Notes: a model not told the origin generated them from the sequence alone. Shown: positions 1 through 49,183, numbered from the stretch's first letter. The stretch: 64,000 bases of DNA from Eutreptiella sp. 'Long Island Sound 2002' (GCA_964036045.1 OZ038378.1:29946001-30010000), one strand, 5' to 3'. Made by a program: numbers and translations.

Positions 1-891
1 GGGACCACACACAGGCATGTGCTACTGATTTTCTTGCGCACAATACTTGTGGCACACGTGCCAGTAGTGCAACCACAACAACCGCAAGGTTCGGCCTCAC
101 CATGCATCCTTGGGTCAGTTACCACCTCTCCCTTTTGCAAGTGCACTGCCACATGAATGCGCATCCTTGCCAAAGCAATGGCCGCTCCACAAAAGAAACA
201 AAATTATGTTGCTTCCGCGGGCCGCACGTTGGTATGTGCCACACCAGTGCATGGCTCTGCACGCAACCGAGGACAATTTGGCACCTTTGCGGTTTTCACA
301 AAGGCAGATAGGGTGCCCAGTGGAATGAGCCAACAACCATCGGCATCCATTTGGGCATCCAAAAAAAACGACATGCCCATTCCGAAACTCACATTGCGGA
401 CCACACCGTCCCGTCCACCGCAACAAAATCGGATCGTTGGTCATGGCGACAAAATGAAAAAATTGACCTGTTACTTAGGCGTCACAAGTTGCCCACCCCC
501 CACCTGGCGCTATGGCCCACGGAAGTCCATGTTGTAATGAGGGGAAAAGTATGTGAAAAGGGGTGTTATTTTTTGGGTATCCAAACCCCTCTGGTGGCAA
601 CATGCAAAAACAAGGTGTGTATTTCAAATATATGCCATTATTTGCATTTCTAGAAACACACAGATTTTCAAAATAAAGACATTCAATCCCCAAAATATAG
701 TGTTGTTTTACATTTAGACCACTGCATTCCAGTGGGGGGGGGGGGCTGCCTATTTTTCTCTCCCCTTTGTTCGAGCTTGATCACAGAACCCCCCTATACA
801 CCACAGATGAGGGAACCCCAAACATACCTTTCATTGAAGCACACAGAAAACTATCCCAAAGCATGTACTTGTATTTCCTATTTTAACCAAC

Positions 892-1215
892 CTGGCCGAA
901 ATTTCGGCCAGCTCTTCGAAAAATGTCCAAACACATGGTCCTATTTGACAGACAGGCCTAAGCTGGCCGAAATTTCGGCCAGGTCCATCGAAACTCCGAA
1001 TATGATCACTGAAATGGGTACCTAAGACAATAGACATGAGCAAGGAACACAGGAGCAGTGACATTTGAACAGGGTGTGCAACATAATATACTCAATTACA
1101 AGCAAATACTTGCCACCTGACGAATCAAAGCAGACTTTTGCAGTGCCTATGGGGAAACACAATAATAAAAGGCGGAAGAGGCTGAGGACTGCATGCTGGC
1201 CGAAATTTCGGCCAG
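892..1215. repeat. Cluster of 20-bp palindrome CTGGCCGAAATTTCGGCCAG (892, 963, 1196)
   Basis: Three perfect copies read directly; first spacing 71 bp. Confidence 0.95.
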
Positions 1216-1254
1216 ACTTCATACTGACAGGCAATATAAGCAGCAGGACTGGCA

Positions 1255-3844
1255 TTAGCGCTTGCGCAGACCAGATGCACGGGGCTTCTTAGCACCTGTG
1301 TTAGGAGGAGGCTTGGCAGGGGCTGCAGCACCAGGCTTGGCAGTGGCAGAGTTCTGTGACTGTGTGTTTCCACCCTGGGATGGTGAAAAATGATTCACAA
1401 AAGTATTCATACCTTTGCCAGTAGGGGCAACAGTGCCTGAGGAGGAAGCTGGGGTGGCCTGAGCGCACTGCGTGCCACTGGGTGAGGGGGCAGGGGCAGT
1501 TTTGGGTTTCTTCTTTGGAGTGTGTGTCTCTGGTTGCGACTCTGCCTCCCCATCTTGCTCCTCAGGATCCTCATCTACATACCTAACCCCAGAACAATCC
1601 ACAGGAAAACCTGCCCCCAAGTCGTGGTACACATCCTCCCATGACTTGGGGGGGGGCACGTGTTGGTGTTGGTGATAGCTGCTCTGATGGACTGAACAAA
1701 CTCATCAGGCACAACAGTCTCCTCACCCAAAAGGGCACACACAACATTACAGTCCTTGGAAAACCTGGTAGACATCATGCTTGCAAAATACACAGACAGA
1801 GTCCCTAGCAAAAACCAGTTGCCTGCCCGTTCTGGGACCGGAACCAGGCTCAAAAGAAATGAGAATATCTCAACAGGCATCACAGACGACATGGGTCCTT
1901 CAGTAAAAGCCACGTAACGGGGCAGCCTGTTATCAAAGGCAGTGGCAGAACAAACGGAAACCAGATGGGACGTAGAAGTGTACAGCGGGGTCTTGCTTGA
2001 CAAATTGTAAATTGCAACATCACACTGATACATATCCTTAGCCACAGTGGCCTTCAAAGCAGCAACAGTGGCTTTCACATCAGCAGACTCACCCGCAATG
2101 AACACAGGCACACCGGACAAAAGCAGCTGCGCAACCAGGTTATGCAAACCAGCTGTATAGAGGCGGGGCACCTCAATGACACAAGCAGCAAAGGGCAGTG
2201 AGCTAATGATACTGGGAAAAGGGACTCCACAACGCATTGCCATCAGTTCCACACGGCCTGACTCTGCAATGAGTTTGCCTGTGCTTGACTCAACGAGGGA
2301 CTCCCTAGCACACTGGATACTGACCAGACCAGTATCAGATTTTTCACAAACAGGCTTAGCAACAGGCTTCTGCAACAATCCCCGCAACCCCTCATATTTG
2401 GGTTCCTTCCAAAGAGGGGCCTTAATTACTGCTGACCACGGGGGCCAGGGGTTTTCTTCAGTCCAGGTCCAACTGCCATAGGCTACCTTCAGGTGTGATG
2501 TCATAGCGCGCTGCCTTTTGGCCATCTCGATAGTACCAAGTGTAGCTGCAGACAGGTGGTGTCACAGGGTGGGCTCCTATTGTGCATTAATTGAACGACA
2601 CACAAGCTGGCCGAAATTTCGGCCAGGTCGGTCGATTTATTCGAATACAAACCCCTGTTTGACCAAAACATACCTCTGGTGTTGTTCACAAGCCCATTGG
2701 TAACCGCCTCGGGATGAAGAATGTGCCAGGACCACATCTGGGCCTTTTTAACATCTTTTATAATTTTTTTGAGACCAGGTAGGGTACTTTTTGTCCCATC
2801 CATGTAACCTACGATGTCGCGAAGTCGGTCAGGCGTGATGCCTTCCACTTCCTTGAACGTACCCAGTGCGGGATGTAGTCCACGCTTTTCCATGGCTGCC
2901 ATGGCGTCTACTGAAGCAAGACCCACAAATTTCACCAAACGCCCAACGCCACCCCACCGTTTGGCAACAGCACTCTGCACAGGAGAACATGTGGAACACA
3001 GAAGCTGGCCGAAATTTCGGCCAGGTCGATCGACAAAACCGAATTAATAAACGAAACACACCACAGTGCCTTCCTCGGCAGTAACACCACACTCTTCAAG
3101 CATAACAGTAATGTGACGGTACAGGGTGTACTCATTGGCATCCTCATCCTCAAGCCTATCCAGGAGTAGGGACATTCGCTCCGATGTGGTGGATGCTGAG
3201 CCAGCAGTGGCCTGGATTTGATGTAAGCCTGCAAGCCGGCGCCTAGTCCGCAGGGGGCAGTCCTGTTTGACTTCATAACCACCAAATACCAGGGTCCAAT
3301 CCGGAGTCTCCATATTTTTCATCTCAAATTCGGTCTTGTGTTTTTGGGCAGCAGTGTAAACATGCTGACCCCCCAACAGAACCCAGCGAGTGGCTGTGCA
3401 ACAGGAATATTCGTAACAGCAGGGTCGAAAATTCAGACGCGAAAACGGTACTATCGAGAAGAATACCACAACACACATACGAGTGACTTTATAAAAAAGA
3501 AAATCCTGGATGTAATCCACAGGCGGGGCTGCCTTCAGATCGTCGTAGCGGCGTTGCACGCGATCATCCGAAATCCTACGGACCTGCCCAAATTTTCGGT
3601 CGTGGTCGATAATAATCTGATCCCACCGAACCTTTATTTTCGTCGTTGACGTAACCCAGTCGGATAACTTGATGGAGGATGATGAATTTTTCTTTGGTGC
3701 GGCCTTAGGCTTCTTTTGAAGTCCCTCTGTGCTCGCCTGGTCCTCTTGAGACTGGGATTGCACTTGAGATTGCCCATTGTCTGCTGCAGGCTCACCATCT
3801 GGCGAAACAGCCATGTCCTGTGATACCCCTCCAGGCTCAGTCAT
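1255..3844 (-). CDS. ParB/Srx-like N-terminal domain protein, about 762 aa, 4 exons (3481-3844, 3062-3393, 2674-2974, 1255-2545)
   Basis: Three GT-AG introns (3394-3480, 2975-3061, 2546-2673; donors GTATGT, GTGTGT, GTATGT) join the ORFs in frame. ParB-like motifs VRWDQIIID..KFGQVRRI and WVLLGGQHVYTAA, then PLRTRRRLAGLHQ. A +1 shift is needed at the G9 run 1648-1656. AG acceptor 11 nt before the ATG. Confidence 0.7.
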
Positions 3845-3963
3845 AAAATAAAGGGCTACAGGGCAACATTTCATGAAGGGGAGAGTTCCCAGATAGCAAA
3901 TAACAAGCACAGATCAACCAAAAAAGGACCAAAACGGACTGCCGGACAGGAAAATCGGATAAC

Positions 3964-4122
3964 CTGGCCGAAATTTCGGCCAGCACTGCTCTGCATGTCA
4001 AACCACTGTGTACAAATACCATTCTGAGAGGCTGGCCGAAATTTCGGCCAGAACCTTATGTCATTTGTGTTCTGGGGGTAGCCATATGACAAAACAACAA
4101 GTCTGGCCGAAATTTCGGCCAG
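3964..4122. repeat. Intergenic cluster of 20-bp palindrome (3964, 4032, 4103)
   Basis: Three perfect copies, spacing 68 and 71 bp, between the transposase end and the ParB-like start. Confidence 0.95.
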
Positions 4123-4214
4123 AAAAACATGAAACAGCAAATAGACACACCAAAATCACTGGCAATGCGTGGCAGAACCCATACCACAGTGACAAACACA
4201 GCTGCAAACAGAAA

Positions 4215-6435
4215 TCAGTCCCAGTCCTGGGTATCCACACCGATGTGTTCCGCCTCATCTAGGGCTTCAAAGGAGGCAACGCTGTCTGCATCACAATCAA
4301 TATCCTGGTCACTATCACAAGAGTCGACAGCAATGGAATCATCAGGGGCGGGGGGGGGGGGGGGTACTGGGTGGGGGGGGGGGCGGGGGGGGTACTGGGG
4401 GGCCTCTGGCTCGGGGCTTCGGGGGTGGCTTTGGGGGCAAGGCAATTCCACCAGGAGCAGCAGTAGCAGCAGCAGGCGGTGCACGGTTGGCAGCACGAAT
4501 AGAAGCATGTGCAGTACGCAACACCCCTTGCTCGGCAGCAGTGCGGGCAGGTGCATTTGTCTGTAAAAAATCCTCAACACCCATAGGAACCCTGGTACGC
4601 GCAACCAGATTTTGGATTGCATGCAACGGAACCACTTTTAAACGGTCTGTGGTGATTCGTGTCCTAGACATGGTACCGGGGAACGTCAAATCCTCAACTG
4701 CATCCAGTCTTCTCACCTCAACTTTATAGTCCGGAACGGGAACACAAATGGGCAGGCTCTGTGTATGGGCTGTCAGGATGAATTGTTTAAGATTGGCAGA
4801 GAACATTGCCACGGATCTCTCAGTCAGCACACCACGCAAAACTTTCTCTCCCGGTTGGACAGGGGGAAGTGTCAGAAATAAATCAGACAACTGTTGGACA
4901 CTAGTACAGGCAGTGTTGCGGCGACAGTGGGCTGAGAACCGACTCAGAAGTGCCTCACCCAGCTCCTCAGAGTGGATACACCCTAGGGAGGCGGAATGCC
5001 ATTGACTCCAAAACAAAAGAGCAACAGCGGTGGTTTTCACATACTCCGTGGTTAACTGTTCCTCGGGCTTTAGGATGTTCAGCATGAGCAGTAGTAGGGA
5101 CATCTCAAGTGCCTGCTTAGCTACAATACCGGAACCTGCCCCCCGTCCCTCCCAGTTGCACTCACGAACCAAAGTCCGAATGCTGAAAGCAGCTGGACAG
5201 TATGTGTACAGCAAAGCCTTAAGGGCTAATAACATACGCAAACCCTTGCGCTGAATGGGTGTCAAGTCCCGCTGGCTATTGAGCAGGGAAGTGACGCGCT
5301 CATCTAGTCTGCCTCTATTGGACGATGTGGCTAGCATGAGTCCAAGCAACGTCTTTTCCATATGGATGACCTTGACCTTGCGAGGGAGGATAGACCCAAC
5401 CTGAAGGCTGTTCCCATGCTCCAAAAACTTAATGAACGGCGGGAACGCCCTGTAGATCAATTCAACGCAATACTTATAGCTATGCCATAGTCCGTACACC
5501 AAAGGAAAACCGAACAGTAATTGTCATACATTCCAGGGAACATAAGCAGCACCATAACACAGCTTAAGTAGGGCAAAGTGTATTTTCATGTCCACAAGCA
5601 GCGGAACGCAGTGTCTGGTGCGGTGTTCCACACATGACAAATCAACCACGAGTTGCAAAAGCTCTTTGTGTGTGCCGGAGCGGAGCTCAGACAGGAAAAA
5701 GGGTCTCCAGTTGAGGGAACGGACATTTTTTCTGGCAATATCCAAAGGAGCACGAACCCAAACTCTCTGAATACCTTGGTTGGCAACATCAATACGATCA
5801 AACAATGCTCTATGTGAGGGAAAGATGTCATCAGCAACCTTTGGTACCCTGGCCTCAATTTCGGCCAGCTCCGGCAGACCCCGGTATGCAAGTAGGGCAG
5901 TAGTGTGCAAAACAGCAACAGCTGTGCAGTTTAGGGTTAAGTCGGGTGAATGGGGATCAGCTCCCGACCTGTAACGCCTCAAGTTATCAAACCATATACA
6001 AACTTGCCTACGGTGCATGGTGTTCCACAAGTTGTGTGCTGCTAGTCCAGCACGATGGTGAATGGACTCCTGCTTAGTGTTACACTGACCAAGGACTCCT
6101 ACCTTACGGCGTTGGCGGCAGGACATAATACCCCAGTTGTAACCAGACCCACAGTTAGAGTATGGGAGGGCCATACGGCGCAGCAGGCAGTATAGGGCAT
6201 GGAACTGTGACAAAAATGTCATGTACCATCGTGGGGGCTTCTTCTCAGTGGCGGCAGCCTTCAACTGTGTCAAGGAGTACCGGCTCCTGCGATTCTTCCG
6301 CAACAAGAGGCAGAATTGCAAAAGCTTTTGCAAAGTCCCACCACGTAATGCATTTCGCAACAGCCCTTTGGCTGTAGTAGCAAAAGCACCAGTAACTGCA
6401 GCATGTACAACATTGACAGTAATAGCAGAAGACAT
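4215..6435 (-). pseudogene. DDE-type transposase, Academ/DUF6589-like, about 740 codons, one nonsense codon
   Basis: ORFs 5524-6435 and 4342-5502 are in the same frame, separated only by TGA at 5524-5526; this aligns to Arg in the 40-42 kb paralogue. Motifs IWFDNL ... LLVDMKIHF ... VYGLWHSYK ... HSEELGEALLSR. The acidic C-terminus (to 4215) is reached by a frameshift in the G-run near 4345-4400. Confidence 0.7.
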
Positions 6436-6506
6436 TAATGCTGAGACAAGAAAACAGTTATGTAGGAGTGTATGGTGTAATACTCATGAACAACGACAAT
6501 TGCAAG

Positions 6507-6807
6507 TTGGCCGAAATTTCGGCCAGGTGTGTTCAAAGGGGAAATAATTGCTTAAATGTTCAAAAATAGGAAAAGCCGGCCGAAATTTCGGCCAGACCGC
6601 CCAAAAACCAAAATATAAGTGCTTGAATAGTGAACAGACCAAAAAGCTGGCCGAAATTTCGGCCAGCCCTAAGAAAAATGAAAATAACTATGCCTATTCA
6701 CCAGGAAACCAAAAAGCTGGCGGAAATTTCGGCCAGAAGGGTCAAAAACTGCATATACACATAGTTGTTTGCAATGTTACCCAAAACCTGGCAGAAATTT
6801 CGGCCAG
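6507..6807. repeat. Regularly spaced array of five 20-bp palindromes (6507, 6576, 6647, 6717, 6788)
   Basis: Period 69-71 bp, with 49-51 nt A-rich spacers; one perfect copy and four with one mismatch. Confidence 0.95.
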
Positions 6808-7391
6808 CTTCAGAAAAACGTCAAATACAACACACTAGAAGACGGGGATACACAAGGCTAACACATCAACACGTATTTCAACGGGTGTCACACAGCTCTG
6901 CCAACAACTTTGGTCCCATACGTCAAACAACATACTCAAAGTAGAAATGTAGAATATTGTCAAATCGCGCGTGTACGGGGTCCTAGAGGGTGGGCAACTT
7001 GTGACGCCTAAGTGTTACGGGGATGGCATGTCCTGTCGCAAGCGCCTCCTCAGTGGTACCATAAACCCGTGCACCGTCAACCAGGGATGGATCTAACTAG
7101 GGGGGTGGGTGTCCCTCCCCCCCCCCTTGTTGTGACGAGGCGTCACGATATGTGTCACGAAAAAACCCGGTCACAGATTGAGCCACGCAGGGTACCAAGA
7201 GGCAGGCAGCACACCCCTTCCAGAGAGGCATTCAATGCAAACCATTGCATAGTCCAACAAACAGTTTTTTTTTGTTTCTTGCTAGTACACTAGGGTTCTT
7301 ATTCACTGTCACTGTGCACCACGGTTCTTATTCACTGTCACTTTCACTGTCAGTACCACTTTCCTCGTCACTGACACTAAGGGCGCTTGAG

Positions 7392-9700: not shown

Positions 9701-11275
9701 ATTGAATACTGCTTTACGTCACTGGTTAGGTGGGGTTTCACAGGTGGCTTGGTTGTCCTCTGTGCAACATACGTGTCGTGCACCTCCACACAGACCGCAC
9801 GTGGATACTCCTTCACCATGACAGCCGCAGCCTTCTCGGCAGCTATCTTTCTTGCACTTGTGACCTTCATATGGGGCTCGCAACGGACGTGTTCCGTGGG
9901 CACGTTTGGTTTTTCATGGTGCACCGTTGACGGCGGGGATGGATCTAATTTGTGCGTCACTCAGGGGCTGGGGGTGGGGGGTGGGGGGTAGTGAATTGTG
10001 ACATGTCACAAAAAATACAATAGGCCATAGTGGGAAAACGGCTTTTCTGAAAAAATTGTGACACCCAAAAGACTTTGTGGTACTTCCTGAGGGCAGTGGT
10101 ATTTCTGAGGGCATGTGGGAAGGTTGTGGAATTGTCATGTTTGTGTTTTTGAGCTTGCTGTTTTCTGTGACAGTTCTAGTTTTGTGACATTCTGATTGCA
10201 CACGCAACATAGAAATGAGACACGGTGTCAACCGACACTGTGTTCTCTGTAGGCTCCAATGACTGAAGATATTGACAACTCATTCGTGTGCTGCATCTTT
10301 CTGACAGCCTTTGTCACAGTTCTGTCATGGGTCGAAAGAAAGTGGATTGTCAGTGTGATCCGCCGTGTGTTTCTGCCGCGGCATGTCGACAAAAAAGGAG
10401 CCGTGCAGGCCGTCGCGCCGTGGGTGCTGTGGGTGCAGCTGTGGTCGGTGTTGGTGCTGTTGTTGCAGCTGCAGCTGCTCTAGCCGCCAGGTCCGGACTG
10501 CAAACGCCTATCAAGCGGCCTGCATCACCGACACAAATGGCACCTCCTCGGAAAGCAACAAAACACAGGAGCCTGTTTGAAACATTTCAGGCACAACAAC
10601 CAAAGGCTCCTCCGATAGTGAAGGTGCAGGATGTTGCGCCAGCTCTGCTGTGGTTCCGCGGTCACGGTGCATTTGAGGGGGACGCACTTGCCACTGTGAC
10701 TGCGTCTTTATCAAAATTGCAATTGTGATACAATGCAACATTGTTTACATTTGTGGGGGTTTGACCACACCGGGCGGTTTGTGATGTGCGCCGCAACCGA
10801 TCGGTTGACGCATGTTCAACATTGCCGTTCAAATACTCAATGACAAGTTGTGTAATATGCACGGTGTGCCCATTGGCGCAGGGGACATAGGCTCGATTTC
10901 GGTCACAACCATGACAACACAGCCACAATTCCAGGGAACAAGCATCGGTAGGATCGCTATCCTCCATTCAAGGCGGTCCTTAACGCAAAAAGTTGTTCCA
11001 TAACTTGGTATTTTCAAAAGAGCCCGCGGACAGTACATGTCTTCACCCCGGTGTTCCCAACTGTTCAACCATGAGTCCCCAGCCCAAAATTTGTGCAAGC
11101 ACACAACCATATGATCCTAGCCCCACATGTGTTGAACGATAGCATCCGAACCGTACCTCACACCCTGCACAATTCAACATGAACAAGAGCAATGTTGTTT
11201 TCAATCAAATGCAGTGACACAGCGTTCGACCACCCACATGTTCCATTGCCGTTGGCACAGCTCATAACAAACCCT

Positions 11276-12358
11276 CTACAACTGGTACAACCTCTGGAAG
11301 TGCACCGTGACACGCTCCATAAGCTCACCCTTCCCCCCGCTGACACTCAAACCATGCTTCCTACAAATGGCCTTAAACTCAACTTTAGTCCAGTCATGCA
11401 ATTTCCCCCTCTCCATTGCCTTCAACACCGCCTCATCCACATCATACGCGAACACCAACTGCGCGGCAGGGTTAGAAGAGGTAGAGGGGACAGCTGATGG
11501 GTTACAAAGGTCGGAAGAGGAGCTACTAGCAACTTCACCTGGCTGCTCCAAATCCTCGTCCTCACTATCTTTGTCCTCACCCTCCAACCCAACCCCATAC
11601 ACATCGCCAATATCGGCGTGACGAGTTGCCCTCTTCGGGACAACCCACAAATCTTGAATGTTCAAATGAACCTCTGCCTGAGCATCCTCTTCGAAAGAAA
11701 TTGGCAAATCCTTGAAAGCAACAAACCCAAGCAAACCACCATCTTCCACCTCAACCGCATGCCCTTGCTTCCGTTTGCGCGGGCGGAAAGGGGTCTTCCG
11801 GAGATCATGAAACACCTCAAAGGGCCCCCAATCCTCTGGTGCCTCCCCATTGCACCTTACCCAAAGTGTCTCACACATGCACTCCGTGCTTTGGCCAAAG
11901 TCAGTAGCCGTCACGTAGCTAAACACTCTACACGAACACGAGCTTGCCTCAACCCAATCCTCCGCTGTAGCACTAACATCCCACTAAGTTCCATTGAAGC
12001 GTGTTAGGACATCTTCAATCAGAGTGCGAAGAAACTTCATCTGGCTACCCTTGATGAGGCTACTCCCTACGTCAACACCCAACGATTCGTCCCTCCCCGC
12101 TGGAATGACATGACGCATGGTGTGCAACAGCTGTGTGCACATCACGTTCATCAAACCCTCGACGGCGGCGACTCGTGCCCCCCTGGTCGCTTGAACTTTC
12201 TTGTTTGTGGCACAAACCACAGCAAAAGCATCACAAAAAAAAAACAGCCGTGAACTTGAAAAGGGGGTGCGAAAGTGCATTGAATAAGTCCTAGGCCTTC
12301 TCCCTACGCCCCAGGTCAGCCTCAATGATAATGTACTCGGGTAGGTGTAGGAGAACAA
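11276..12358 (-). pseudogene. Disrupted ORF ending in a SAP domain
   Basis: ORFs 11984-12358 and 11276-11926 are in frame across one TAG. Acidic linker, then WTKVEFKAICRKHGLSVSGGKGELMERV, a SAP-type pattern. Confidence 0.55.
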
Positions 12359-16355: not shown

Positions 16356-17534
16356 AACTGCAGACCCGTCCAAGTGCAGCAGGGTAGCGCTTTTTTGTCC
16401 CCTTCTTGGCCTTAGGCACTCTTGCTTCGCAAGTCTTGTTGGTTTGTGTTGTGGATGGCCACAACATCAAAGAGATTGGTTGCAAAAAGTCCCATTCTTG
16501 AGAAGCTCTGCATTCTCATGCGGCCGCAACAGCCGCCCACATGCACAGAATTGTGAGCTAAGCTGAGGCAAGATGACGTGCTTGTGGGGTGCTCCTCCGT
16601 TCTGACTCCTTGAGGGCTCCTCTTGGCTCCTGGCTTCTCTCAGAGCCCGCCCAGGGTGCGGCAGAGCCGTCCTGGAGCCGGGAGGGCTTCACCATCATTG
16701 CTGAGTGTGCAAGAAGAGGTTTCAGAGAGTTTTAGTGCTGCGGCTGTGTGCTGTTTGCCTTTGGATTTGCCGCTAGCCTGTGGTGGGGCGTTGGCAATCA
16801 CCACCATATCACCATTCAACAACCAACTGCCACTCCAAGAATAACGGGGGGGTTGGCACGAGGCCATGGGACTAAGGGGGTGGGGGGGAGGAAAATGTGA
16901 AATGTGGAATGGCAAAATTGGGCGCAGAGAAAATCTAGGCTGAATTCTTAAATATTGCTGGAAAATGTGCCACAAAATTTCCAGATTGTGGCACAAGAAC
17001 ATGCCGACCGTGAATGGTGGTTGTTATTTCCTATGAGCCTTTGGTTGGCTGCTGTTATTTCTTGGAGACTTCTGGGGGCTGGTTTCTTGGATGCTGGATC
17101 CCTGTAGAGCAAAATGCGCGGGCACAATGGGAATGTGCATGCCAAGCGAGTTGCAAATGACACCTGGAAAAACGGCGCCGGACCTTACAATACCATGGCA
17201 CAATTTGGCACACTTTTGCTGTGCCAAATTGTGGCATTCCAAGTTTCATCATTCCCAATTTCGCATGTTCCCTATTCCCCCCCTCCCCGGTAGGTGGGCA
17301 GGGCTGGCCCACATCCCGGGAAGATGCCTCTGCTCGTTCTGTAAAATGCGCGTCACGTGCTGTCTTTTGCGCGTCAGCTTCGTGTTGACTGCACATTGGA
17401 TACCGTCGGGTGCTGCTATGTGCTGGTCGTGTGCTGCGTCCGGGTGGGTGTCGGGTGCTGTCGAATTGCGCGCGGTGGTGCGCGCGACTCCTGGACGCCT
17501 CGTCTGCGCCTCGCCCGTGCCGGGCTCGCCACAC

Positions 17535-17751
17535 CTTCGCCTCGTCTGCAACGATGTACAGCGGCGGGCTCGCGAAAGTCACGCGGGACAAGTGCTGCAG
17601 CGCCGCGTTGTTGGTGGCGGAGAACATCATCGTCTGACGTGTAGAGGGCAGCCTCTCCAGAATCTCATCAATGTCGCGCTGAAACCCGTCAGCCAGCAGC
17701 CGGTCCGCCTCATCAATGATGAGGCACCGCAGCCCTTTGTATTTCCAGCCG
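17535..17751 (-). CDS. DEAD-box RNA helicase (HAS1/DDX18-like), exon 5
   Basis: GWKYKGLRCLIIDEADRLLADGFQRDIDEILERLPSTRQTMMFSAT (motifs II and III). Acceptor tctgcag, donor GTGTGG; phase matches exon 4. Confidence 0.92.
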
Positions 17752-18288
17752 CTGCAGACACAAGCGTGCGCTGAGGGGTACCCTTGAACACGCTGTGCAG
17801 ATGCAGTCAGAGGGCAAAGCATATGAGGGACTGACATCACGGAGGGTCCCATAAAGGCTGAGTAGGTGTGCTGGTTGAAGGCAAAATACGAGGACCGTGT
17901 GGATTGACCCCAGCTGACCCAGAGCGACCGGGACAATGCAAAGGAAACCCGTGGCGTGAAGTGAAGAATGCGTGGCTGCATGGCACGCAGTTCCAGCAGT
18001 GAAAAAGTGATTTAGGGTTCCCACTCGAAAACCCCGCGAGCCCTTGGCGCCATGACTGAGACTCAACATGTAGCGAAGTTGAGGGCATCGGAGCAGAGCC
18101 TGGCAGACCGCGGTTACACCGCGAGTAAAAAATGTTAGCATTATTCAAATACTTCAACTCACGATTCCATGTTCTTGGATTTACTTGCGGTTGAAACACC
18201 CATACACTTGCGGTTACAACGTCCGTTTGATTGACGTTGCAACCGCAAGTAAAGGGTGTTGTAACTGGACGTTGTGACCGTAAGTAAA

Positions 18289-33552: not shown

Positions 33553-35380
33553 CACGGGGGGGGGCGACCCCTCGGTTCTGGACGCCAACTACCCCCCCAA
33601 CTAACTGTTGGCCAGAGGCCCCTTGGGGGGGGTTCAGGGAGGGCGAATGGGGGGGGGGTATAGGAGGGGCTGGGGGGGGGGGGTCCAGGTGGGGCGATTT
33701 GGGGTGTTGGGGGGGGGGGGGCACAGGCTCCCCTTACCTCCCCTTGCCCTCCTCTAACCATACCATCACCATAAACCTAACCCTAACCTTTGCAGCCACT
33801 TGGTTTGGCCATGCCAGCCATGTTGATTGGGTTGAACAAGATCCCCCCAATTAGGTTCATGGTTGCTTTTGCCACATTATTGCTCTCCATTTTGGACCCC
33901 AACACTCACTTTGACCCTAGCCTAGGGTGAGAGCCAGGGCTAGGGTTAGGGCTAGGGTTACCGAGCTGGTGGAACCAGTCTTGGTTTTATAACCCTTTTT
34001 AGTGTCTAGGGTGGACCTACCAGGTTTAGCAGCAGCAGCAGCAAGCAGCAAGCAGCAGCAGCAAGCAGCAAGCAGCAGCACGCGCGAAATGGGTAAAAAT
34101 CAGATTTCCGTCGTGGTGCTTCAGATTCGGGTGAAATTTTGGTGGATGATACCTATGGGTGTGAAGTACAATCACACAAAGTTTGAGCAAGAAACTCAAC
34201 GGTGGCGGCCGGGAACGGGATTCGCAAGTGGCGGACCTCAGTTTCAAAATCTGCAGTTTAGGGCCAAAAACAGCCATTTTTGGGCCAAAAATGCCCTGGA
34301 ACACATTCAAAACGGCCAAACGAAGGGAAACGGTGGGTACACTCCACGTGCCGCTTGACTTCCCCGTGTCAACGAGCTCTTTGCGGCCCTCTAACTCCAT
34401 GATATGCCGCGGAAGTGGCCCAAAAAGGCCCCCAGAAGCTCCAAATGCCGACAGCCACAAACCAAGAATAGGCCATATCTTTGGCTACATGGCTCAAAAT
34501 GCGATTCCGAGGGCACCTAATCCACCCGCAACCCCCCACGTTTTGTGGTTTCCACCCCTCAGAATTGCCCAAACGGACGCCTAGACCCCAATAACTAGGC
34601 CCACTAGGCTGTGGCAAGCTGCAAGCTCAAGCCCAAACAGGTGGGTACCCAAATGGGTCAACAGGGTCCGAAAGGGGTAAAAATGTGACTTTCCGCAAAA
34701 ATGATCCTAGACCATGTGCGACGCTAAAACAAGTGTTTTTGGACCGTTTTGAGCTTGTGGTGGCCCATTTGGGTCGTCCAAAAATCCCAAAATGCCTTGA
34801 AAATGGGCTGTTTTGGGACCAAAAATGGGTCAAAAATGGGTCAAAAACACATTTTTCCAAAACTCATCGTAGACCATTTGGGGTGCACAAAAGGGTGAAA
34901 TGAGCCCATTTTGAGCCCATTTTGGGGCATTTTGGCCCCTGAGAAGTCCAAAAAGCCTTGAAAGTGGGCGTCGTGGTGATGGGGTTCAGGTGCATTTCAC
35001 TTTGTCAAGAGCCATCAGTGTGTGAATCATTCTTGATGTCCCTCACCATTCATATCTAATGTTCCCTCCCCCACCAGCTCGGTCCCAATATTCAGTCTTG
35101 ATTAGGGTTAGGGTTGGGTGTAGGGACAGGAGCAAGCTGAGGGTTGGGGGTGGGTGTTAGAGTCAAGGTTGGGTTTAAGGATAGTGTTGGGGTGCAAATT
35201 GGACAAAATTTTCCTTAGGGCACCTTTGGTGTTCATGGAGCATCGGGCGCCTTAGGCGCCCATGGAGGCCTGAGGGCGACACCTTTGGCAACTAACTGTT
35301 GGCCGAAGGCCCCTAGGGGGGGGGGGGGGGGGGGCAGGGGTAGTTGGCGTCCTAGGACCCGCGGAGTCGCCCCCCCCGGG
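33553..35380. mobile_element. Second copy of the telomere-repeat MITE, interrupted by a nested 1.1-kb element
   Basis: TIRs C(A/C)CGGGGGGGGCGAC..GGACGCCAACTAC, with 8-bp direct repeat AACCTGCC at 33545-33552 and 35381-35388. Confidence 0.75.
33960..35083. mobile_element. Non-coding element with 13-bp TIRs ACCGAGCTGGTGG inserted in the TTAGGG-like core
   Basis: Inverted repeats at 33960-33972 and 35071-35083. The sequence is absent from the 18.3-kb copy; no clear TSD. Confidence 0.6.
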
Positions 35381-35422
35381 AACCTGCCATTTCTCGAAAC
35401 GTGCACACAGCTGAGGTAACAC

Positions 35423-35578
35423 CTGTGGTACGCTCCTTCAGAAGGGTATTCACAGCCGGGATGAGGAAAGCAAGGGTCTTTCCAGACCCGGTCTTGGCCT
35501 GCCCCACCACGTCCTGCCCATACAGCAACGCTGGGATGCACTTCTGCTGGATGGGGGTCATAGTGGAGAAGGGCAACC
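35423..35578 (-). CDS. DEAD-box helicase exon 2
   Basis: [37 protein letters not shown] (Q motif and motif I). Acceptor tttcag, donor GTGTTA. Confidence 0.93.
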
Positions 35579-37829
35579 CTGAAACAGCAGGGCAAGTGCG
35601 GCGTGGGACATGTGGTACAAGCAGCCCACATGTGCAATGTTGTTCCTTGTCTTCCCTTAGGCCAGGAGAACACACAAAATAGACAGCAGAAGACACATGG
35701 TGTACAACACCGGGTGCTTGGTCTGCGCAAATGGCCAAATAGTCGCACTGCACACGCACTTTGCTCCAGCTCCCCCCCCAGTCCCTCACGGAGAGGCCAT
35801 TCAGGTGTGGTGCACTCTGGGCCCCCTCGTCTACGCGGGCTGTAGCACCGCAGCTAGCACCGGTGGCACCCAGGGCAGGGAAGCACTCTCTGTGCCCTGG
35901 GGCCCCTCCACCTGCCCGGGGTATGCCACAGGCTGTGGGGAGCCAGACCCAGTCCATGTGGCAGCACCACCTGCGCCGAAGGCAGTCAAGTAGTGCGGGT
36001 CTGACCCCAGTCATGCCGCGTACCACCGCCTTCCTGTGCCGGCCGGCAGTTGTGGAGCAGTTGGGTAGCTTGTCCTTGTGATGTGGAGGTTGCGCTCAGC
36101 GTCAGGCTCTCCAGCCTCCCTGCTGGGGCCTGGAGCACCAGGCACACACTTCCCCGCGCCATGCGCGCAAACGCTGACCAACAGTGGAGCAAGCACGTGT
36201 GCCACAACCCACCCTCCCCCCGCTCAGACACACAAGGGCACATACACACAGGCACAGCAACATCTCCCACCCGCGAGGGCCACTGCGGGGTCTGGGGGCA
36301 GTCAACAGTCCGGCAGGCCTTGTGACCGGACACGGCCGCCCAATCCCGCAGGGAAGGGGTCGCAGACCGTGAGTTGCCAACCAGTGAGGCCTTGACCCAA
36401 CCCAACCCAACCCAACCCAGCTCAAAAGAGAGGCCATTCAGGTGGTGTGCCCTCTGGGCCCCCCTATCTACAGCAGCGTCACAACAAGGTCATCCCCGGC
36501 AGGTCCTCAGAGCAGGGAAGTGCTTTGCCTGCCCTGAGACCCCTCCAACTACCTCAGTGGCAGGCACAGGCCATGGGAAGCTCGCCCCAGCTGACAGGCA
36601 AAACCACCTGTGCCAACTGGCAATCACGGAGTGTGGAGCCTCCCCAGTCGGACCTGGAGCCCCACCTGCCCCCGTGCAACAGCAGTCGTAGGGCGGCACG
36701 GTAGTATGTCTTTGTGACCTGGAGGTTGCGGTGCCCTGGCCCATATCTCCCCTGGTGGGCTCAGCGTGTCAGGCTCCCCTAGCCTCCCCACTGCGGCCCA
36801 GAGCACTGGGCACACACAACCTCTCCAAGGCACCCACAGTCACACACACAGGCACTATGATGGCGTCTCCTGCTCACCAGCGCCACGGTGTGGTCTATGG
36901 CGGCTCTACCAGCCCGCTCAGCCTTGGAACCGGACAGCCAGGATTGGGGACCAGTGCCGCACAGGGAAGGATGTGCTGGCCTGCAGTCCCCACCTGTGTG
37001 AGGCCTGTCACAACCCAAACCCCCAGCTGGATGGTCAGAGGGTAAACCACGTCGGTTGGAAGGCAACCAAGGGTGGGTTGATGGTAGTCAGCACAGTCAC
37101 TGGGGGCGGTCCATGATGCAAAAAACAAAAACCCTTCCTCCAGAATTGCCCCTAGTTTCTAGTGAGCAGTGGGGCACTCCTGACTCCGGCATATGGCAGC
37201 ACTGTCGCGCAGAGGTAAAGCCACTGCAAGGGGCATGACACAGCTCCTGTGTGGGTGGGGGTGGGGGGCATAAAGCAGCACAGCCCATGTCACAGGGTTG
37301 AAAACTTGCCTGTGGTAGTGACGTGCCGGGCAACTGCAGTAGGGCGGCAACCAACAGTTTTTGGAGCGTGACTGACGACCGTTAGGTGACAACTGACGGC
37401 GGCTCAAGTCTCTGTCAACCAGCAGAACGCATGTTGCATTGGCACGCCTGAAGGGGCACCCAAACGCGTTTATGTGGGCAGAAGGGCCAGGGCTGTCCTG
37501 AATGGAACAAAGCAAACAACGGCTGCCCTCTTATAGCACATGATGATCAGCAAAGGCGATCGATTACTGGCCAAGCGGCGTCAGTTGACCATTGTGTACC
37601 GTCGGTTGAGAACCCACCACCGTGGGTGAACCGCCATTCTGCCACCCAAGACCTCAGGCCGTCCTCGGTCAACAAAAAGAGAAGTAACTCATTCCTAAAG
37701 GACAGCCTTGAGAATGGCAGGAAAGAGGGTATGGCATGCCTGATCTCCGTAGAATTACCAACCGCCAGCCAAACCCCCACCCTGTGCAGCATTGACCCAG
37801 GGACAGAATCATGACAGAGGGAGTGAGAC

Positions 37830-47413: not shown

Positions 47414-49183
47414 TTAGGTGCCATCCCCCGGCGCATCAGTGGGTGCCTTCCGCTTGGCGCCCCGGGGCCCCTGCTCCGGGGGTGGGGGCGGGGGCAGGGG
47501 GGCAGCGGTGCGGTCCAGCACAAAACAGTGGCACCGGTGCCCCATGTGCAGCAGCTCCTCCTGCACAATGGCCCAGACGCCGCCGAGCGCCGCAACGCCC
47601 TCGTGCACCAGCCGGTGCTCGGTCGTCAGGAGCACGGCGCGGCCGGTGCCGGGGCGGCAGACCCGTGCGAGCTCCCGCAGCGCCGCGTTGTAGAGCCGCA
47701 CGTTGCTCGAGTGCTTGCCGCACCGCTGCCCGAACGGCATATCTGACACGACCACGTCCACGGCCCCGGCGCGCAGCGGCAGCCGCGTGACATCCCAGTG
47801 CACGACATCGATGCGGGTGCCGCGGCAGTTGGTGGCGGCGTGCCCGATGGCCCCGGGGTCCCGGTCCCCGGCGACGTACGCGGCGCCGGGCCACCGCCGC
47901 AGGCCCTGCACGCACACGGACGCCGTCCCGGCCATGGGGTCGCACACGACCATCCCGGGCCGGATCCGACCGAGGCGCGCGAGGCAGTGCGCGACGCAGC
48001 TCTGCAGCGTCGTCGGGCAGAACGACTTCACCCGGTCCCCCGTGTCCTTCCGCCGCGAGATCCGGTTGCCCATGTCGTGGCCGCGCGTCAGGGTCACGCC
48101 CACCACCGCGTCGCCGTGCATGAGCCGGAGGTAGACCTCCAGGTCCGGGCGGTTGAGGTTTGCGGGCCACCCGAACATTTCATTGAGCGTTGCCCCAAAC
48201 TGCGCCGCAGCGAGAACGGAGCGGAATGGGTGGTGCCCGAGGCGTTCGCAGGCGACACGGAACGACGGCAGCCCGGGGCCTGCCCCCCTGGCCCCACGCT
48301 CGCCGGCCCCGGTGCCGTCCCCACCACCGGCGGCCAACGGCGGTGGCAGTCCAGGGAAGCTCTGCTCCCACTTCCGCAGCGCGTCGGCCCAGGCGACTTT
48401 ACGCGGCAGCTCCGCCAGGCACGCGACCGCGGCGTCCTTGTCCTGCAGGGGGAGACCGACGGCGACCTCCACAAACGCGTACACGTTACTGAACGCCGTA
48501 ACTGACTGCACCGCCTCGGGGGCCCCCTCGTAGCGGAAGAACAGGTGCCCGGCGGTGCACACAACCGCCGCACGCGCCAGCTGCAGCTCCTCGACGCAGT
48601 CCTCCACCGCCAAATGCTCGATTCCGAGCGGGATCGTCGCGAAGTAGTTGGGGCGCATGGCGCGAATCGTGGGCCACAGGGCCGCCAGTGTGCCGAGCCG
48701 CTCCTCCGCATGGTGGTGCACAGCCTCCTCCGGCGGGATGTGTTCCGTGTTGGCTGGCCCCTTCACCGGCACTGCCCCCACAACTTGGCTCGCTTTGTTG
48801 GTGACAGCCGCATCCAACGGAATTGCGAACTCCGCTGCCGGGGACATTCCGCTCGTGTTGCCGCCAGTGCTCTGCACTTGGATCGCGAACTGGTACCGCG
48901 CTCCCGGCAGCAGCCCCGGCACGACGATGCTGCGCCGGCGCTTCTTGTCCCGGCACACCTGCCGCCAACTCCCCCACGCGCCATCGTCCCAGGCGCGGGA
49001 GAACACGATGTAGGCGAACACGTCGCTGTGCTGCCGCTCCCCAACGGTCTTCGGGTCCCAGCCCGGTGCATTGCGGGCCTCGGGCCACTCCAGCATCACA
49101 TAATTCCCCTTTTTGTAGTGCACAACAGGTGCTGCCTTGACGTCAGGCGGCGCAATTGAAGCGGCGGGGCTCTCTGCGTCCAT
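47414..49183 (-). CDS. tRNA (guanine-N2) methyltransferase, THUMPD3/Trm14-like, with N-terminal FN3 domain; 589 aa, intronless
   Basis: THUMP region (SFRVACERLG.H.F.S, NLNRPDLEV), motif I VVCDPMAGTAS, motif IV VDVVVSDMPFG. FN3 pattern VMLEW...VVPGLLPGARYQFAIQVQS. Very GC-rich uninterrupted ORF. Confidence 0.9.
   Translation of the reverse strand: MDAESPAASIAPPDVKAAPVVHYKKGNYVMLEWPEARNAPGWDPKTVGERQHSDVFAYIVFSRAWDDGAWGSWRQVCRDKKRRRSIVVPGLLPGARYQFAIQVQSTGGNTSGMSPAAEFAIPLDAAVTNKASQVVGAVPVKGPANTEHIPPEEAVHHHAEERLGTLAALWPTIRAMRPNYFATIPLGIEHLAVEDCVEELQLARAAVVCTAGHLFFRYEGAPEAVQSVTAFSNVYAFVEVAVGLPLQDKDAAVACLAELPRKVAWADALRKWEQSFPGLPPPLAAGGGDGTGAGERGARGAGPGLPSFRVACERLGHHPFRSVLAAAQFGATLNEMFGWPANLNRPDLEVYLRLMHGDAVVGVTLTRGHDMGNRISRRKDTGDRVKSFCPTTLQSCVAHCLARLGRIRPGMVVCDPMAGTASVCVQGLRRWPGAAYVAGDRDPGAIGHAATNCRGTRIDVVHWDVTRLPLRAGAVDVVVSDMPFGQRCGKHSSNVRLYNAALRELARVCRPGTGRAVLLTTEHRLVHEGVAALGGVWAIVQEELLHMGHRCHCFVLDRTAAPLPPPPPPEQGPRGAKRKAPTDAPGDGT

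Follow-up and report, generated by a model that had tools for sequence, protein, structure and literature searches.

A 64,000-nucleotide stretch of the Eutreptiella sp. 'Long Island Sound 2002' genome (GCA_964036045.1 OZ038378.1:29946001-30010000; hereafter, the window) contains, at positions 474-7012, a 6.5-kb DNA transposon with two conserved genes, gene A, a putative transposase, and gene B, whose product is predicted to adopt a ParB/Srx fold leading into a DNA-binding region. Fourteen copies of a 20-bp palindrome, CTGGCCGAAATTTCGGCCAG, are spread over this element, and diverged relatives carry the same pair of genes together with palindromes of their own. We propose that the gene B protein, acting as a dimer, binds the palindromes of its own family and that the coat so formed is needed in cis for mobilization, a reading to which we would give an even chance.

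Structure of the transposon

The element is complete. It is bounded by perfect 25-bp terminal inverted repeats (TIRs), CTTAGGCGTCACAAGTTGCCCACCC, and is flanked on both sides by a 5-bp target site duplication (TSD), TGTTA (Table 1). The TSDs of two other copies, L001 and L002, are likewise 5 bp long (TGCTA and TATGT, respectively), and the three copies are independent insertions. The only conserved genes in the element are A and B; both lie on the minus strand, A is always upstream of B, and coding sequence makes up 69% of the total length. Inspection of the open reading frames (ORFs) of the element revealed no ParA-like gene. We are dealing with a cut-and-paste DNA transposon of a eukaryote, mobile and delimited by TIRs and TSDs. 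The first-pass annotation of the window had recognized both the eukaryotic character and the completeness of the element; the TIRs and TSD that it reported were confirmed, and its reading gains from the finding that the element is multicopy, with non-autonomous derivatives.

Both genes are broken in the window copy, which could move only with proteins supplied by intact copies. Gene A has lost 2 nt in a C-run near position 4383, and exon 4 of gene B carries, within the C-run at 1648-1656, two bases more than its counterpart in the intact copy L001, which is a single 380-aa frame (L001:7383-8522). These frameshifts, lying in homopolymer runs, could be assembly errors; G/C runs vary in length between copies at 1648-1656, 4345-4400 and 730-745 of the window. 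The in-frame stop codon of gene A at 5524-5526 (VPWNV*Q against VPWNVPQ in intact copies) cannot be an error of the homopolymer kind and, since intact copies read straight through, is taken to be a mutation. For the same reason, an intron at 5470-5530 was rejected.

Palindromic sites

When up to three mismatches were allowed over the whole 64-kb window, the palindrome gave 14 matches (nine exact, four with one mismatch and one with two), all of them within positions 892-6807; none fell in the other 57 kb, and none would be expected from shuffled sequence. Thirteen of these sites are in non-coding DNA even though most of the element is coding (binomial p ~2e-6, by arithmetic from the coordinates). 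The remaining site, inside gene A, is also found in L001 and L010, and it seems to have arisen in place since no insertion is apparent relative to other lineages.

The 13 non-coding sites share 97% pairwise identity, against 33%, about the random level, for their 25-nt flanks. It is the palindrome alone that is maintained, not its surroundings, and the possibility that the sites are parts of a longer repeat unit was discarded on this ground. Nor are the arrays simple tandem repeats, because Tandem Repeats Finder (TRF) detected no 70-bp or other long-period tandem repeat in the element. Variant copies show one-sided, uncompensated changes, as expected for decay. Spacings of 62-80 bp account for 42 of the 96 adjacent pairs over all lineages (median 70.5), and the ~70-bp spacing recurs in L009 and L003b despite unrelated spacers. 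Values of 67-73 bp are very frequent in the window copy, L001, L002, L003b and L009, and a spacing of 77 bp is seen in L008.

Outside the family, the exact 20-mer was found in 26 JGI metagenome contigs, as a single copy in each, and none of these contigs has gene A or gene B; these occurrences were set aside as unrelated to the element. Most of the 26 contigs, which are GC-rich and probably from marine bacteria, represent one conserved locus in which the 20-mer has the context cgcctgtggcaacgc / ccttgaccttataaa (L011, L013, L014, L016 and ~14 other loci). Clusters of the palindrome were seen, over the 64-kb window and the metagenome scan, in these elements only. The confinement of the 14 sites to the element within the window, put forward in the first-pass annotation, was confirmed. 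Neither the palindrome nor the TIR nor the assembly accession turned up in a literature search.

Related elements

The close relatives all come from ENA assembly ERZ25074135, with the addition of one JGI metagenome contig (L010). Gene A forms a cluster of 267 members at 90% identity, and gene B exon 1 forms clusters of 248 and 90 members; numbers of this order indicate that the family runs to hundreds of copies. The window copy and L001 are 97.5% identical at the nucleotide level. L002, which is 3.6 kb long and non-autonomous, derives from a sister subfamily; its termini are those of the window element except for one mismatch. Both of its ends are built from the terminal array on the gene A side, gene B is reduced to a remnant of exon 1, and the number of palindromes has risen to 26. 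A distance of ~4.5 kb separates this copy from a piggyBac-type transposase ORF (PF13843; L002:1133-1945); DNA transposons appear to be abundant in the source genome.

The association of gene A, gene B and a palindrome peculiar to the lineage recurs in L003b, L003a, L008, L009 and L005-7 (Table 2). It spans at least five lineages from at least three separate assemblies or metagenome sets, and the palindromes occupy similar places in all of them: upstream of gene A, in the spacer between A and B, in the introns of gene B and downstream of gene B. Four lineages share a 10-bp core, CGAAATTTCG, around which the arms alone differ, always symmetrically. This pattern points to what may be a co-evolving protein-site system of self-recognition, and it strengthens the first-pass prediction that the element encodes a site-specific module of its own. 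The termini are less variable between lineages than the palindromes: the sequence CTTAGGC...TGCCCACC is common to the window element, L003a and L003b.

Table 2. Lineages in which genes A and B occur with palindromic sites
Lineage	Source	Gene A identity and ORF	Palindrome
Window, L001, L002, L010	ERZ25074135; JGI metagenome (L010)	reference	CTGGCCGAAATTTCGGCCAG
L003b	same genome	41-44%	CTGGGCGAAATTTCGCCCAG, one symmetric C/G swap
L008	same genome	34%	TTCCATTCGAAATTTCGAATGGAA, 15-16 sites
L003a	same genome	31-38%	GGTGCTGGCACCAGCACC
L009	metagenome	29%, 750-aa ORF, E 4e-79	GGACCCGAAATTTCGGGTCC, 12 sites
L005, L006, L007	lake-type metagenomes	27%, 706-aa ORF	TTTAGGGGCGATCGCCCCTAAA-like, 11-13 sites

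L003 carries two diverged members arranged head to tail (L003:1-6476 and L003:7338-13660), ~860 bp apart; both are degenerate, and part of gene B is inverted within the second (~10966-11526). Sites in L005 are found at positions 7, 424, 561, 2903, 3718, 3972 and others, with arms TTTAG...CTAAA, whose outer bases match those of the KorB operator, possibly by coincidence. In L004, positions 2241-3185 and 3552-5210 correspond to an intronless gene B followed by a 552-aa ORF with an Arg/Glu-rich tail.

Gene B

Gene B consists of four exons separated by GT-AG introns of 87, 87 and 128 nt and encodes a product of ~761 aa. The exon boundaries are supported by the relatives. Conservation between subfamilies stops at ...FLFYK at the end of exon 1, several relatives have ORFs that stop a few residues past the same conserved V-C at the end of exon 2 (among the alignment rows shown), and the intronless relative P0068 spans the junction of exons 2 and 3 with the same spacing. 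Other intronless relatives are P0087/P0146, P0102, P0106, P0109 and P0123. Introns 3 and 2 have in common a 49-nt stretch (window 2598-2646 and 2996-3044; 86% identity) centred on the palindrome, which suggests that their interiors are related by duplication or by insertion of one shared unit. In the P0024/P0026 subfamily intron 1 also contains a palindrome, translated as GRNFGQ.

Residues 78-288 of the gene B protein, used as the query of an exhaustive HMMER search, yielded 81 relatives, most of them ORF fragments from eukaryote-like contigs of the ENA, JGI and Logan data. From an alignment of 67 rows AlphaFold2 (AF2) produced a model of residues 78-288 with a predicted local distance difference test score (pLDDT) of 81.7 and a predicted template modelling score (pTM) of 0.75; confidence is low only at the very end and in the part of the sequence that intron 1 contributes. 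In a Foldseek search of the PDB with this model, the top 24 matches were all ParB, Noc, KorB, PadC or sulfiredoxin structures, from sources including M. xanthus, B. subtilis and C. crescentus (best E 6.7e-3, best probabilities 0.98-0.99). The alignments to ParB, Noc and KorB extended over ~190 columns, of chains of ~180-220 residues that comprise the N-terminal and DNA-binding domains. Template modelling (TM) scores were only 0.3-0.4, which may reflect the 29-residue insertion and a variable angle between the domains. Among viral models, the best matches were ParB/Spo0J helix-turn-helix proteins (E 1e-4, probability 1.0), and PHROG 1033, 'ParB-like partition protein', was matched by seven of the 67 family members (best E 2.4e-5). 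The model thus predicts that residues 78-288 form a ParB/Srx fold leading into the first helices of a helical DNA-binding region.

The sequence motifs follow the order D...GQxRxL, GGQH(x)3A, PxW and TPLxxRRxLAGxHQ; GGQH(x)3A, the most conserved of the family, corresponds to the Gly-rich active-site motif that proteins of this fold carry where a strand turns into a helix (GERRxRA in ParB). Sequence and profile searches of the PDB with residues 78-288 returned noise, apart from an alignment of GGQH with GG(C/S)HR of sulfiredoxin 3cyi that is not significant alone (E = 2). The first-pass annotation had described a four-exon gene for a 762-aa protein with a ParB/Srx-like domain. The exon structure and, very nearly, the length stand, and the fold is upheld by the model and by the PHROG matches of the relatives; the domain itself went undetected by Pfam in the window copy.

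The domain of ~300 aa encoded by exon 4 found no match by Pfam, NCBIfam, PHROGs or PADLOC or by sequence and profile searches of the PDB. No methyltransferase, 2-oxoglutarate (2OG) oxygenase or other enzyme signature was detected in it with Pfam, NCBIfam or profiles against PDB sequences, and across lineages it has no conserved residue of catalytic appearance and no conserved HxD...H.

Gene A

Gene A is intact in the sister copy L001, with a single open frame that encodes 738 aa, and measures 722 aa in the commonest cluster. Whether used alone or as a profile, it matched nothing in Pfam, NCBIfam, PHROGs, PADLOC or the PDB. Intact or distant homologues gave nothing meaningful against Pfam, NCBIfam, PHROGs and PADLOC, all ORF pieces of genes A and B were without a Pfam match at E up to 1, and sequence and profile searches of the PDB with gene A returned noise only. 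In a profile search of a set of 5.8 billion proteins, everything recovered was a copy from the same assembly, and no relative with an annotation appeared. An AF2 model from a 14-row alignment was unusable (pLDDT 32).

Several motifs are nonetheless kept across lineages down to 27% identity: W(F/M/V)DN, RxPLD, LxDxxIH and YGVWHxYK, as well as (M/I/V)EK, VRxCxWxGR and EExxEAxLSxL. Candidate D, D and E residues are found in all lineages, in W-F/M/V-D-N, L-x-D-x-x-I-H and E-E-x-x-E-A-x-L-S, respectively. Read as a pattern, their separation by ~130 and ~180 residues would be compatible with a DDE enzyme into which a helical domain has been inserted. The DDE type named in the first-pass annotation is thus a candidate assignment, for which the database searches gave no match. 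From these conserved acidic motifs, the TIRs, the 5-bp TSD and the copy number, we infer that gene A is a putative transposase. A TSD of 5 bp is typical of Transib among the classic superfamilies; Transib was rejected in view of the lack of a RAG1 or other Pfam match at E up to 1 and of termini that start with CTTAGGC and are not of the CAC type. The element apparently belongs to an unclassified superfamily, with a transposase without detectable relatives.

Table 1. Features of the transposon (coordinates refer to the window)
Feature	Position	Strand	Remarks
Left TSD, TGTTA	469..473	.	read in sequence; compare TSDs of L001 and L002
Left TIR, CTTAGGCGTCACAAGTTGCCCACCC	474..498	+	related termini in diverged L003a and L003b
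Palindrome, exact	892..911	.	downstream of gene B
Palindrome, exact	963..982	.	71 bp from previous site
Palindrome, exact	1196..1215	.	directly downstream of gene B stop
Gene B exon 4	1255..2545	-	C-terminal domain, fold without match, and basic tail; L001:7383-8522 is one open frame
Gene B intron 3	2546..2673	-	128 nt, GT-AG; contains palindrome; splice sites
Palindrome, exact	2607..2626	.	within intron 3
Gene B exon 3	2674..2974	-	possibly more of the helical DNA-binding region, by sequence pattern only
Gene B intron 2	2975..3061	-	87 nt, GT-AG; contains palindrome; ends of relatives' ORFs
Palindrome, exact	3005..3024	.	within intron 2
Gene B exon 2	3062..3393	-	second half of ParB/Srx-like domain (GGQH) and first DNA-binding helices; alignment, model
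Gene B intron 1	3394..3480	-	87 nt, in frame, ORF reads through; stretch missing from intronless relatives
Gene B exon 1	3481..3844	-	low-complexity N-terminus and first half of ParB/Srx-like domain (GQxR motif); conservation, alignment
Palindrome, exact	3964..3983	.	gene A/gene B spacer
Palindrome, exact	4032..4051	.	gene A/gene B spacer; 68 bp on
Palindrome, exact	4103..4122	.	71 bp on; missing from L001 by a 30-nt deletion
Gene A, putative transposase	4215..6435	-	intronless; ~740 aa in intact copies, broken here
Palindrome-like, CTGGCCTCAATTTCGGCCAG	5849..5868	.	two mismatches; in gene A coding sequence, encodes LAEIEA
Palindrome, one mismatch	6507..6526	.	upstream of gene A
Palindrome, one mismatch	6576..6595	.	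69 bp on
Palindrome, exact	6647..6666	.	71 bp on
Palindrome, one mismatch	6717..6736	.	70 bp on
Palindrome, one mismatch	6788..6807	.	71 bp on
Right TIR	6988..7012	-	inverted-repeat match to left TIR
Right TSD, TGTTA	7013..7017	.	read in sequence

Genomic setting

The window as a whole is eukaryotic: it contains an ORF with a SAP domain, and introns interrupt its DEAD-box helicase fragments. Host-like ORFs were noted at 11276-11926, 17055-17981, 35352-36026 and 47414-49183. Among them are the SAP-domain ORF, a pair of minus-strand DEAD-box helicase fragments separated by ~18 kb, and an ORF of 589 aa that has an RMKL-like methyltransferase domain and matches fn3 weakly. An Rfam scan of the whole 64 kb gave no match.

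Discussion

The account that we favor assigns the reading of the palindromes to gene B. Dimers of its protein would bind the palindrome of their family, whose conserved core and lineage-specific arms would jointly supply each family with an address of its own. With sites in every non-coding stretch, often ~70 bp apart, the element could be coated by many dimers and labeled as "self." The coat would be required in cis for mobilization, where it might recruit or position the transposase and help to pair the two ends, an accessory role like that of TnpA in En/Spm or of the Myb-like protein in PIF/Harbinger. Binding by a gene B dimer is suggested by the dyad symmetry of the sites, which suits a helix-turn-helix dimer of the ParB/Noc/KorB kind, and by the fact that the sequence, and not pairing alone, is kept within a family; the same idea has been proposed for the algal protein PAG3 (see below). 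The combination of a shared core with variable arms would be consistent with one conserved and one family-specific contact. As for the role in mobilization, action in cis is favored because L002, a derivative deprived of the genes, keeps and multiplies the sites.

Several observations weigh against this account. Genes A and B both co-diverge with the palindromes, so that sequence alone cannot say which of the two proteins is the reader, and the N-terminal region of gene A is basic and conserved. The model of gene B reaches no further than exon 2, inside the DNA-binding region, and the presence of a complete helix-turn-helix is deduced only from the lengths of the fold-search alignments and from the sequence pattern of exon 3 and P0068. 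The arginine patch of ParB box II, GERRxR, is missing; its place is taken by GGQHxxxA, with no conserved arginines, and CTP-dependent loading and sliding in the style of ParB cannot therefore be assumed. GGQH looks closer to the GGCHR of sulfiredoxin or the DGQHR of DndB-type proteins than to GERRxR. The ParB-like clamp envisaged in the first-pass annotation is rendered doubtful by this replacement. The C-terminal domain of gene B, ~300 aa long, has no explanation in our account, and one incomplete metagenome contig, L004, has both genes and no clear palindrome. Finally, the sites nearest to the ends lie 205 and 418 bp from the termini, and some sites are in promoter-like positions; for these reasons, a regulatory or chromatin role fits as well.

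This last point brings in the main rival, namely that gene B binds the palindromes in order to control chromatin or transcription, through anti-silencing of its own family in the manner of VANC in VANDAL elements, targeted DNA modification as put forward for PAG3 and the ParB-methyltransferase proteins, or a KorB-like autoregulation of A and B. Such a role would fit the arrays that immediately precede the start codons of A (6507-6807) and B (3964-4122), and the presence of sites throughout the non-coding DNA and not at the ends alone; KorB, a transcriptional repressor, is among the best structural matches. The ParB-like proteins published from transposons carry DNA-modifying domains as fusions, ParB-like partners are needed by phage T-dioxygenases (PMC13229309), and the C-terminal domain of gene B could be enzymatic. 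Yet that domain shows no enzyme signature by Pfam, NCBIfam or profiles against PDB sequences and no catalytic-looking residue conserved across lineages, and the accumulation of sites in L002, which has no intact gene, is most simply explained by a requirement in cis for movement. We regard a chromatin or transcriptional role as possible but doubtful. Slightly less probable, and in our view rather unlikely, is that the palindromes are internal and subterminal sites of the gene A transposase, gene B being some other accessory, such as a ParB/Srx-type nuclease or NTPase or a protein that interacts with the host. Many DNA transposons do carry subterminal repeats that are bound by their own transposase, and here site clusters are found within ~200-750 bp of both ends, non-autonomous copies keep the sites, and gene A has the basic N-terminal region already mentioned. 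On the other hand, perfect dyad symmetry fits a dimeric helix-turn-helix like that of ParB, KorB or Noc, which the gene B fold resembles, and the fair conservation of the termini between lineages whose palindromes differ suggests two separate recognition systems. It is also worth considering that the palindromes might act as nucleic-acid structures, either DNA cruciforms or RNA hairpins affecting splicing, stability or the production of small RNAs. They are perfect inverted repeats, two of them lie in introns, and their arms change between lineages and stay complementary. Such a role appears highly improbable, given that the sequence itself is kept within a lineage (97% identity among copies), that variants carry one-sided changes left uncompensated, that a 10-bp core is common to four lineages, and that a palindrome with zero loop makes a poor hairpin.

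Returning to binding by gene B, one could envision that the element represents an unclassified and widespread group of transposons, defined by the 5-bp TSD, the CTTAGGC termini, a transposase without detectable relatives, an obligatory partner of ParB fold and co-evolving palindromes, in which the arms would serve as a barcode preventing cross-mobilization and the ~70-bp phasing would reflect a higher-order complex. This broader proposal is tentative and we would not call it probable; if true, the group would possess in effect a eukaryotic ParB-parS-like pair. The ParB family is best known from the segregation of bacterial chromosomes and plasmids, and its occurrence among the putative accessory proteins of eukaryotic transposons has been noticed only recently. 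With 6.5 kb, two genes and one 20-bp site, the element offers a compact test system, to which the lineages add natural variants of specificity: four arm variants around one core and two unrelated palindromes. The questions that it opens are by what means a transposon distinguishes itself from members of sister families, whether DNA can still be bridged or coated by a ParB fold that lacks the arginine patch for CTP, and what fixes the 70-bp phasing. In addition, the putative transposase, being without detectable relatives, may define a further superfamily of eukaryotic DNA transposons.

Comparison with known systems

The first-pass annotation knew of no described transposon family with this combination of features, a statement that is out of date, as PAG3 and the ParB-methyltransferase proteins precede it. 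What sets the present element apart is its compact form, with two genes, a TSD of 5 bp and a transposase that has no detectable relatives, the lack of a recognizable enzyme domain on the ParB-like protein, the presence of sites in every non-coding segment, and the natural specificity variants. PAG3 is a ParB-like protein of red-algal Plavaka (EnSpm-like) and other transposons; its N-terminal domain is ParB-like (best HHpred match, 7BNR), tandem inverted-repeat arrays lie beside the gene, a putative 2OG oxygenase domain gives a faint HHpred signal (E 0.016), and binding and modification of its own transposon were proposed (Petroll et al. 2025, bioRxiv 10.1101/2025.02.11.637652). Gene B resembles it in being transposon-encoded, with a ParB-like domain at the N-terminus, inverted-repeat arrays in the same element and a proposed binding of self DNA; 7BNR is also near the top of the gene B fold matches. 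As judged from its description, PAG3 differs in being accompanied by PAG1 and PAG2, in elements that are giant and of Plavaka, Zisupton, Mutator or Fanzor type, whereas the present element holds its two genes within a compact 6.5 kb, has a 5-bp TSD and encodes a transposase that fits no known class. Its sites are dispersed through all non-coding parts, introns included, with ~70-bp phasing. Gene B has no oxygenase signature, which is no proof of a difference since the signal of PAG3 itself is faint.

Accessory proteins that join a ParB-like domain to a methyltransferase have been described in transposons of brown, green and red algae, including Ectocarpus Sola1-1 (PMC12477816). Here, too, a ParB-like domain sits beside a transposase in a eukaryotic DNA transposon and binding to self DNA has been proposed. 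These proteins are methyltransferase fusions and their elements are giant, while gene B has no methyltransferase match; the text consulted mentions no palindrome arrays for them.

With the bacterial and plasmid systems, ParB-parS, Noc-NBS, KorB-OB and SopB-sopC, gene B shares the fold of the N-terminal domain and the start of the DNA-binding region, and the element shares palindromic sites in many copies. KorB sites are dispersed over the replicon and sopC is a phased array. Unlike bacterial ParB, gene B has no ParA partner, carries GGQHxxxA in place of GERRxR, contains introns and belongs to a eukaryotic host; the site is 20-28 bp long and of a different sequence, and a function in segregation is not implied.

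Another parallel is found in the transposons that couple a transposase to a separate sequence-specific DNA-binding protein and carry repeated internal sites, namely En/Spm (TnpA and TnpD) and PIF/Harbinger (a Myb-like protein and a transposase), in which non-autonomous copies keep the sites. The present element differs from both in the fold of the DNA-binding protein, in TSD length, termini and transposase, and in having palindromes as sites, which also occur in introns and between genes. A further analogy is offered by VANC, the anti-silencing protein of VANDAL (Mutator) transposons, in which short motifs accumulate in the non-coding DNA of the protein's own family and diverge between families. 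The pairing of an accessory protein with family-specific non-coding motifs is common to the two systems. VANC is not ParB-like and its motifs are not palindromes, and the effect on methylation, shown for VANC, is conjectural for gene B.

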